A stretch of 62,964 bases of DNA, the filler included, from Reticulomyxa filosa (lineage: Eukaryota > Protista > Foraminifera), in assembly GCA_000512085.1 (NCBI GenBank). It is 17 parts of 17 records of this genome, joined end to end, with 100 filler letters (N's around TTAATTAATTAA, not from the genome) between each part and the next. Parts side by side here need not be neighbours in the genome. Positions count along the whole stretch, not along the records: positions 60,837 to 61,844 come from ASPP01018432.1; 16 more parts are not named here. One strand, given 5' to 3'. How positions within the stretch are numbered: position 1 is the first letter of the stretch; each line of letters opens with the position of its first letter. The position numbers and the translations under genes are program-made. Shown here in pieces: positions 60,837 to 61,844 of the stretch. The notes beneath the pieces are model-generated. The model saw only the letters and a list, made by a program, of their open reading frames with translations. It searched no databases and was not told where the DNA came from.

Positions 60837-60908
60837 CAAGCCGCGTCATTTGCAGCCTTCGGCTGCAGCGACGCTCACAAGTTCGCGCGCATGCGCGGGT
60901 AGTTATGT
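60837..60908 (+). other. attC site 1 (5' end truncated)
   Basis: CCGCG(T)CAT pairs with ATGCGCGG. R' GTTATGT at 60902-60908. Internal TGCAGCC-TTC-GGCTGCA hairpin. Confidence 0.8.
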
Positions 60909-60920
60909 GTTCGGGAAATT

Positions 60921-61149
60921 ATGACTCCAAGTAATCAGATAGTTTTTAAATCGCTGATAGGCTATGGCTTATTTTTCCTTGTTATTTGGCTTTTTTTAGT
61001 TGGCGTCCTTGTGTTTACTGGAGAGGCAAATCCGTCATTCAAAGGCTAAGCATTTCATTTTTCGCACTACAAATACCTACATTGGTACTGGTAATTAAAA
61101 CCAAAGTAATGCTCAATAAAAACCGAATAAAAATGAGATATACACATAA
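60921..61149 (+). CDS. Cassette 1: small membrane protein; 42 aa as read (stop 61047-61049), probably ~75 aa if frameshifts are corrected
   Basis: MTPSNQIVFKSLIGYGLFFLVIWLFLVGVLVF, a second hydrophobic stretch in a shifted frame, and a TAA inside R'' at 61147-61149. Confidence 0.55.
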
Positions 61150-61221
61150 CAAACGCCAGCACACCGCGCTTGCGGCGTTGGACTCGCAACAAGTTGCTCG
61201 CCTGTGTGGCGGGCGTTAGGC
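61144..61221 (+). other. attC site 2 (78 bp)
   Basis: R'' ACATAAC; L'' GCCA(G)CAC and L' GTGTGGC with an extrahelical G; R' GTTAGGC. Confidence 0.92.
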
Positions 61222-61225
61222 ACCA

Positions 61226-61624
61226 ATGAAACCAGCATTCATAATCTTTATATCAGGATTTATTCCGATTTCGCTGTTAGTACTGGGAAGCTACCTAGTG
61301 AATCCCAAAGGGGATGCACATTTAGGTTCAATGGTTTTTTTCATTGAAGCTATTTTTTATCTGATATGCCACATCATAGGGTTTTTATTGTTTTTTATGC
61401 GTCGAGGATGGATCGAAGATAATTCACGGTTAGAGTTTCGATCGATTGGTTTTACTGCGTTTGTTATATTTTTTTCAAATGCATTTACTTTCTATCTGAT
61501 AACCTCAATTTTCACTGGCTTGGCAATTAATTTAGATAAATTGATTGGGTTAATATCACCTTCGCTGGTTGGTCTTTTTGTCGCAGGTACGTGCCTTTAT
61601 GTATACCGCAACAAACGGGCCTAA
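61226..61624 (+). CDS. Cassette 2: 132-aa hypothetical four-TM membrane protein
   Basis: Intact ORF starting 4 nt after R'. Its stop TAA lies inside R'' GCCTAAC. Four hydrophobic segments. Confidence 0.85.
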   Translation: MKPAFIIFISGFIPISLLVLGSYLVNPKGDAHLGSMVFFIEAIFYLICHIIGFLLFFMRRGWIEDNSRLEFRSIGFTAFVIFFSNAFTFYLITSIFTGLAINLDKLIGLISPSLVGLFVAGTCLYVYRNKRA

Positions 61625-61711
61625 CAAGCAAATGTTAGTCGCCCATGCTGCGCACGGGCTGCGACGGCAAAACGCATGCGCGTTTTCCCGCGCTAAATTT
61701 GGTAGTTAGAT
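61619..61711 (+). other. attC site 3 (93 bp)
   Basis: R'' GCCTAAC; L'' CAAAT(G)TTAG and L' CTAAATTTG; R' GTTAGAT. Confidence 0.92.
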
Positions 61712-61751
61712 TTTTCGTCTTTTGTATTTCTCTGCTTTAAGGAGTGATTTT

Positions 61752-61844
61752 TTGAAAAAACATAAACATTTTTGTTTGTTTTCCTTTTCTCTGGCTGTGC
61801 GACAAGTCAAATGATGTCTGTCGATGTCGCAATATCTGAGATGT
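61752..61844 (+). CDS. Cassette 3: probable lipoprotein N-terminus (needs +1 T in the run at 61769-61773), 3'-partial
   Basis: AAGGAG Shine-Dalgarno at 61739-61744 and a TTG start. The corrected reading is MKKHKHFLFVFLFSG-CATSQ, which contains a lipobox. Confidence 0.6.

Follow-up and report, generated by a model that had tools for sequence, protein, structure and literature searches.

The closest described systems are the sedentary chromosomal integrons, recognised by more than 19 attC sites and by a fixed chromosomal place across a species, and represented by the Vibrio superintegron with its VCR sites and by the integrons of Shewanella, Pseudoalteromonas and Xanthomonas. Well-studied attC sites often carry two or three extrahelical bases. 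Cassettes are cut out by the integrase IntI as circles and put back at attI; genes close to Pc are expressed, and distal ones are silent (PMC4889954). Sets in which two attC sites or more lie with no intI close by are known as CALIN (PMC4889954). In R. salexigens, one integron was predicted by RAST (PMC5159575).

In the mechanism proposed for the locus described here, a cassette would be a unit, circular when free, composed of one promoterless gene and one attC site. IntI would shape the attC bottom strand into a hairpin with imperfect pairing, consisting of an R box, an unpaired spacer of 3 nt and an L box, the latter bearing one extrahelical base below a variable, branched tip, and would cut between G and TT of R′ (G/TT). 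From such a cut it follows that cassettes should begin with TT(R)RRY, and that R″ should be complementary to the first bases of its own cassette and not to the R′ that follows. By analogy with related arrays (see below), we infer that an IntI acts on the three sites reported here.

The window, a stretch of 62,964 nucleotides joined from 17 parts of the Reticulomyxa filosa assembly GCA_000512085.1, contains at 60837–61844 a piece of 1008 nt (ASPP01018432.1) in which GC-rich imperfect palindromes alternate with AT-rich stretches. Three attC sites, all on the + strand, delimit two complete cassettes of 313 and 490 bp as well as the beginning of a third; a composition count gave 54–62% GC for the attC sites against 34–36% for the cassette bodies. 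The piece is very probably part of an array of integron gene cassettes belonging to a gammaproteobacterium of the Rheinheimera/Alishewanella/Arsukibacterium group, most likely Rheinheimera itself, and most likely co-sequenced with the organism of the assembly. Its features are as follows.

60837–60908, + strand: attC site 1, 5′ side cut by the contig end, R″ missing
60903–61215, + strand: cassette 1, 313 bp, from TT of R′ to G of the next R′
60921–61136, + strand: cassette 1 gene, small membrane protein with two transmembrane (TM) segments (estimate), 71 aa when intact
61144–61221, + strand: attC site 2, 78 bp, R″ ACATAAC at 61144–61150, R′ GTTAGGC at 61215–61221
61216–61705, + strand: cassette 2, 490 bp
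61226–61624, + strand: cassette 2 gene, intact, encoding a hydrophobic product of 132 aa, about four TM segments (estimate)
61619–61711, + strand: attC site 3, 93 bp, R″ GCCTAAC at 61619–61625, R′ GTTAGAT at 61705–61711
61706–61844, + strand: cassette 3, truncated at the contig end so that only its 5′ part is present

Anatomy of the three attC sites

The stem of attC1 pairs L″ CCGCG[T]CAT with L′ ATGCGCGG around a branched centre and closes with R′ GTTATGT at 60902–60908 (extrahelical bases in square brackets). Between the R boxes of attC2 lie the spacer AAA, L″ CGCCA[G]CACA, a variable centre, L′ TGTGTGGCG and the spacer GGC, and the corresponding elements of attC3 are the spacer AAG, L″ CAAAT[G]TTAG, a three-way centre, L′ CTAAATTTG and the spacer GTA. 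Comparison with the core-box consensus (RYYYAAC for R″, GTTRRRY for R′) revealed agreement at 7/7 positions in both boxes of attC3, at 6/7 in R″ and 7/7 in R′ of attC2, and at 6/7 in R′ (GTTATGT) of attC1, the R″ of which is cut off by the contig end. All three sites show the same L″/L′ stem, in which a 3-nt spacer is followed by 5 bp, one extrahelical base and then 3–4 bp. The extrahelical base is G in attC2 and attC3 and T in attC1, one being evident per site. The lengths of 78 and 93 bp fall in the attC range of about 57–141 bp, and the centres are variable and partly branched. Mutual identity among the three sites is 50–60%. When folded as single-stranded DNA, attC1 and attC3 give branched structures with z of −3.2 to −4.1 versus shuffles; the fold of attC2 is weaker, with z of −1.3 to −1.8.

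A geometry scan was employed for the succession of AAC, an unpaired spacer of 3 nt, an arm of 5 bp and then 4 bp parted by one extrahelical base, the mirror arm, again a 3-nt spacer, and GTT. Within the piece, only 61144–61221 and 61619–61711 match, on the + strand only, with 9/9 pairs each and with the extrahelical G at the same position in both. The same scan returned 528 matches in related genome stretches, as compared with 101 in shuffled sequence.

Covariance modelling complemented these observations. A 24-nt pattern taken from attC1 led to 96 stretches in species-representative genomes, from which sites were gathered by the geometry scan. After removal of the sites linked by BLAST to attC2 or attC3 of the window, and thinning of the rest at 85% identity, 62 attC sites from other genomes remained; their alignment (A1), with a structure comprising the R and L pairs only, yielded the covariance model R1. 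The model is lineage-specific, and its training sites were selected by geometry read off the window's own sites. With filters off, R1 matches the + strand at attC2 (61144–61221, 54.6 bits, E = 1.5 × 10⁻¹²), at attC3 (61619–61711, 43.2 bits, E = 7.7 × 10⁻¹⁰) and at the truncated attC1 (60837–60902, 24.3 bits, E = 2.6 × 10⁻⁵). The best score on the minus strand is 7.7 bits, with 5.4 bits at attC2. Applied to 660 kb of the related stretches, R1 gives 512 sites, as a rule numerous within a stretch and confined to one strand, and the scores of these 512 matches in genome arrays extend over about 30–73 bits, a range within which the scores of the piece are reported to lie. A scan of the piece against Rfam gave three matches, all far below the gathering scores; since Rfam holds no attC family, that scan is uninformative.

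The first-pass annotation of this DNA had described three palindromes with full attC anatomy and had proposed a covariance test of the second and third. Our own lineage-specific model reproduces these two sites to the base. The full anatomy is present in attC2 and attC3, but not in attC1, where R″ is cut by the contig end.

Cassette boundaries, genes and mobility

In both complete cassettes, R″ and the R′ with which the same cassette opens are exact reverse complements (TTATGT…ACATAA/C in cassette 1; TTAGGC…GCCTAA/C in cassette 2). Related arrays follow the same chain rule: R″(1–3) equals the reverse complement of the previous R′(5–7) in 160 of 225 consecutive attC pairs, versus a mean of 15 (maximum 27) for shuffled partners, and the following R′ is matched in 13 of the 225. 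This cassette footprint, R″ complementary to the preceding R′, is general in the lineage. The pairs GTTATGT/ACATAAC and GTTAGGC/GCCTAAC, which had been pointed out before, were thus seen again in both complete cassettes, and reading the R boxes led to the same boundaries as earlier proposed, 60903–61215 for the cassette of 313 bp and 61216–61705 for that of 490 bp.

Evidence that these units move was provided by their occurrence in other contexts. Copies of cassette 2 were found at the metagenome loci L001–L007 and L105–L109 with nucleotide identities of 79–98%. The similarity to L001–L007 begins exactly at G/TTAGGC behind at least five unrelated upstream sequences, and that to L006 stops at GTTAG, after which the next cassettes differ. 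Environmental metagenomes contain copies that are 96–98% identical. Moreover, contigs from four public runs depart from the piece at 60905–07, 61142–46, 61212–21, 61620–21 and 61708–10, which are the R boxes. The summed depth in these four runs is 900–2200 over the attC sites versus 5–41 over the cassette bodies, which means that each attC type is common to many cassettes. Cassette 1 occurs in three of the four runs (X1, X2 and X17), with similarity beginning at 60902. A 311-nt contig of run X1 joins 61214 to 60902, and the step back of 313 equals the length of cassette 1; the joint represents either an excised circle of cassette 1 or cassette 1 behind another attC2-type site. Cassette 2 therefore stands in at least five contexts, and cassette 1 behind an attC2-type site or in circular form in X1. 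Cassette 3 was absent from the four public runs, and a degenerate DNA pattern for it had no match in JGI metagenome contigs.

Two further observations concern the copies of cassette 2. One copy has its attC interrupted, at about window position 61663, by an IS3-family insertion sequence with rve and HTH_Tnp_1 ORFs (L004:950–2593). The palindromes flanking three copies with 79% nucleotide identity (L001–L003) have drifted, with R″-like sequences such as GTTTAAC or GTTTAAT, and they had no R1 match among the best 300 listed.

In the window, the cassette 1 gene is broken: its ORF stops at 61049 after 42 aa, and the remainder continues in another frame to the TGA at 61134–61136. In X1, X2 and X17 the copies are longer by one base behind 61045 and shorter by one A in the run 61129–61133. 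With these metagenome differences the ORF becomes 71 aa long and ends with the TGA at 61134–61136, just before the attC site. So repaired, it matches a 71-aa ORF in Arsukibacterium ikkense (L095). The homologous cassette of that species (L095:1–333) has 69% nucleotide identity and is followed by an attC of a type unlike attC2 of the window, so that related genes travel with unrelated attC sites.

The 132-aa protein of cassette 2 has four homologue clusters, all unnamed, among 5.8 billion proteins. An exact-protein look-up of this product returned no record, and an Atlas feature search with it returned only unnamed clusters, all under 0.9, with nothing significant. Searches of the 42-, 77- and 132-aa ORFs against Pfam gave nothing below E = 0.03.

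In cassette 3, a strong Shine-Dalgarno sequence (AAGGAG, 61739–61744) precedes a TTG at 61752 and the start MKKHKHF, and a hydrophobic signal-peptide core with a lipobox (LFSGC) follows in another frame after the T run 61769–61773. A one-base length difference in this T run would join the two frames, and the putative product, as judged from its sequence, is lipoprotein-like. Such single-base length differences, of which there are two or three within 1 kb, point to assembly error in a contaminant sequenced at low coverage, real decay being the other possible explanation. The piece contains one promoter-like site versus 2.6 expected; the lack of any excess fits the expectation for promoterless cassettes.

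The ORFs that had been placed between the attC sites at first reading thus hold up to differing degrees, that of cassette 2 being intact, that of cassette 1 broken, and that of cassette 3 changing frame. As for the footprint of IntI-type insertion, which had also been put forward, it found support in the R1 matches, in the G/TT breakpoints in at least five other contexts and in the presence of the same attC types beside integron integrases.

Related arrays and the source of the contig

The 96 genome stretches found with the attC1 pattern come nearly all from Rheinheimera, Alishewanella, Arsukibacterium, Alkalimonas and Pseudidiomarina, with few matches in Shewanella, Pseudoalteromonas and Cellvibrio. 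For attC1 the identity is 98.6% with a site of R. texasensis (L039) and 96% with one of Rheinheimera sp. YQF-1 (L033); for attC2 it is 94.9% with a site of Rheinheimera sp. 4Y26 (L044); and for attC3 it is 95.6% with a site of R. mesophila (L038) and 94.6% with one from Rheinheimera UBA8519 (L065), which has an intI at a distance of 3.4 kb.

No intI, attI or Pc was found on the 1008-bp piece, and its link to an integrase consequently rests on these relatives. At nine fetched loci, a tyrosine recombinase of 321–323 aa lies divergent from the attC array. Six of the recombinases were tested and score 455–471 bits on the NCBIfam model TIGR02249, "integron integrase", for which the cut-off is 265. 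Such integrase-adjacent loci with shared attC types belong to Rheinheimera, Alishewanella and Arsukibacterium genomes. The array of Alishewanella longhuensis runs from intI over at least 17 kb (L097 and L099, one contig), and that of R. hassiensis extends over 13 kb (L066 and L073).

Mixed attC types are the rule within the related arrays. Distinct types recur in single arrays throughout L008–L103 and are common to Rheinheimera, Alishewanella, Arsukibacterium, Alkalimonas and Pseudidiomarina. Whole cassettes, too, are in some cases common to different genera, at 84–95% identity. These resemblances suggest a common cassette pool across Rheinheimera, Alishewanella, Arsukibacterium and their neighbours. 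The three cassette bodies of the piece were not found in the 8-kb genome stretches fetched, apart from the 69% homologue of cassette 1 in Arsukibacterium ikkense.

A protein-guided scan of metagenome contigs added five loci with relatives of the 132-aa gene, and their arrays share other cassettes with Rheinheimera sp. 4Y26 (95.5%) and SA_1 (89%). At one of these loci, the array includes a copy of the 132-aa gene with 88% identity, and its far end (L109:4972–10598) abuts lysC (lysine-sensitive aspartokinase) and radD (RadD helicase). The contig is 141.8 kb long, and this flank indicates a chromosomal setting for that relative's array. By analogy, the array from which the piece derives is presumably chromosomal and large, like those of its relatives.

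It is unlikely that the piece stems from a plasmid, transposon or phage bearing a mobile integron or a small CALIN, instead of from a large sedentary chromosomal integron. The piece formally fits the CALIN definition, which asks for two attC sites or more and no intI close by (PMC4889954), and its three attC sites, like those of mobile integrons, are only 50–60% identical to each other; nevertheless, mixed attC types are usual within the chromosomal arrays of the relatives as well, and those relatives carry the same types in long arrays on one strand (at least 13–17 kb; lysC/radD flank). The IS3-type element in the attC of one cassette 2 copy (L004) also speaks for a mobile setting, to be weighed against cassettes that carry no resistance gene. 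The chromosomal array of a Rheinheimera-like bacterium is therefore retained as the preferred source.

A bacterial origin of the piece, one of the claims of the first-pass annotation, is strongly indicated by sequence comparison, since the three attC sites are 95–99% identical to Rheinheimera sites and parts of the piece turn up in metagenomes of rivers, groundwater, freshwater and wastewater (13 studies), habitats that fit Rheinheimera. The maximum share of the piece's words in any one run is 43%. The earlier suggestion that BLAST of the attC sites would place the taxon also bore fruit, the best identities of all three sites being in Rheinheimera (placed under Chromatiaceae in NCBI taxonomy). 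This genus is the probable source; the call is probable rather than proven because the attC types are common to several genera, and some good matches lie in a Shewanella isolate and in metagenome-assembled genomes that bear the label Oceanospirillaceae or Gammaproteobacteria. The shortness of the contig is probably due to the repeated attC sites, at which assemblies break.

Horizontal transfer of the array into the eukaryotic host's own genome is very improbable, even though the contig is placed in a protist assembly. Two of the three genes are frame-broken, as decaying transferred DNA might be, but the breaks include homopolymer-length differences typical of assembly error, and the 132-aa gene and all attC structures are intact. 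The bacterial Shine-Dalgarno sequence at 61739–61744 argues in the same direction, as does the absence of eukaryotic sequence from the contig, all 1008 bp of which were read. Furthermore, attC sites 95–99% identical to those of living Rheinheimera and a cassette 2 that is 96–98% identical to metagenome copies would require the transfer to be very recent; a cassette array physically integrated in the host genome after such a very recent transfer from a Rheinheimera-like associate into the protist is scarcely credible. We infer instead that the contig is free bacterial DNA.

The reading of the palindromes as REP/BIME-like extragenic repeats or transcription terminators between small genes, the probability of which is practically nil, could appeal to GC-rich imperfect palindromes between genes, to a terminator scan that touches each of them and to the unexceptional fold of attC2 (z −1.3), but it was rejected as contradicted by the chain rule that ties each R″ to the preceding R′, by the reuse of gene-plus-site units in other contexts with breakpoints at G/TT and by the integron integrases adjacent to and divergent from such sites in the relatives, the strand-specific R1 matches and the TAAC/GTTA core boxes with their fixed geometry and extrahelical base also standing against it.

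With the piece taken as bacterial array DNA, its practical value lies in assembly hygiene: the contig marks DNA of a Rheinheimera-like bacterium (as prey, associate or contaminant) within a eukaryotic assembly, calls for removal or labelling, and names a likely taxon to seek among the other contigs. The biological addition is small, namely three uncharacterised cassettes, two with small membrane proteins and one lipoprotein-like. The cross-genus pool of attC types and cassettes could merit a dedicated survey.

Comparison with known integrons

The mobile integrons of classes 1–5 share with the piece the recombination logic and the attC core boxes, and the piece differs from them in having no resistance cassette, no class 1–5 context and attC types of an environmental lineage. 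CALIN elements (PMC4889954) are alike in that at least two attC sites lie on one strand without intI in the 1-kb piece. This absence of intI is uninformative with respect to CALIN, since the contig is only 1 kb long and ends inside an attC site and inside a cassette.

The chromosomal integrons of Rheinheimera (R. nanhaiensis, SA_1, 4Y26 and UBA8519 loci) differ from the piece in their cassettes, its bodies being absent from the 8-kb stretches fetched, and agree with it in attC sites that are 95–99% identical and in the same geometry and chain rule. Among sedentary chromosomal integrons more widely, the Vibrio integron has one homogeneous attC type, whereas arrays of the lineage of the piece contain several, 50–60% identical to each other; this lineage also differs in that the same attC types are common to several genera. 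The start of attC2 (TAACAAACGCC) resembles that of VCR. The likeness to the Vibrio, Shewanella, Pseudoalteromonas and Xanthomonas systems otherwise extends to arrays of short promoterless cassettes on one strand, to the RYYYAAC/GTTRRRY cores, to cassettes mostly of unknown function and more AT-rich than attC, and, in the relatives of the piece, to an intI divergent at one end of the array. The element is thus of a known, ordinary kind, its cassettes are new yet ordinary, and the knowledge of integrons built on these systems stands as it was.
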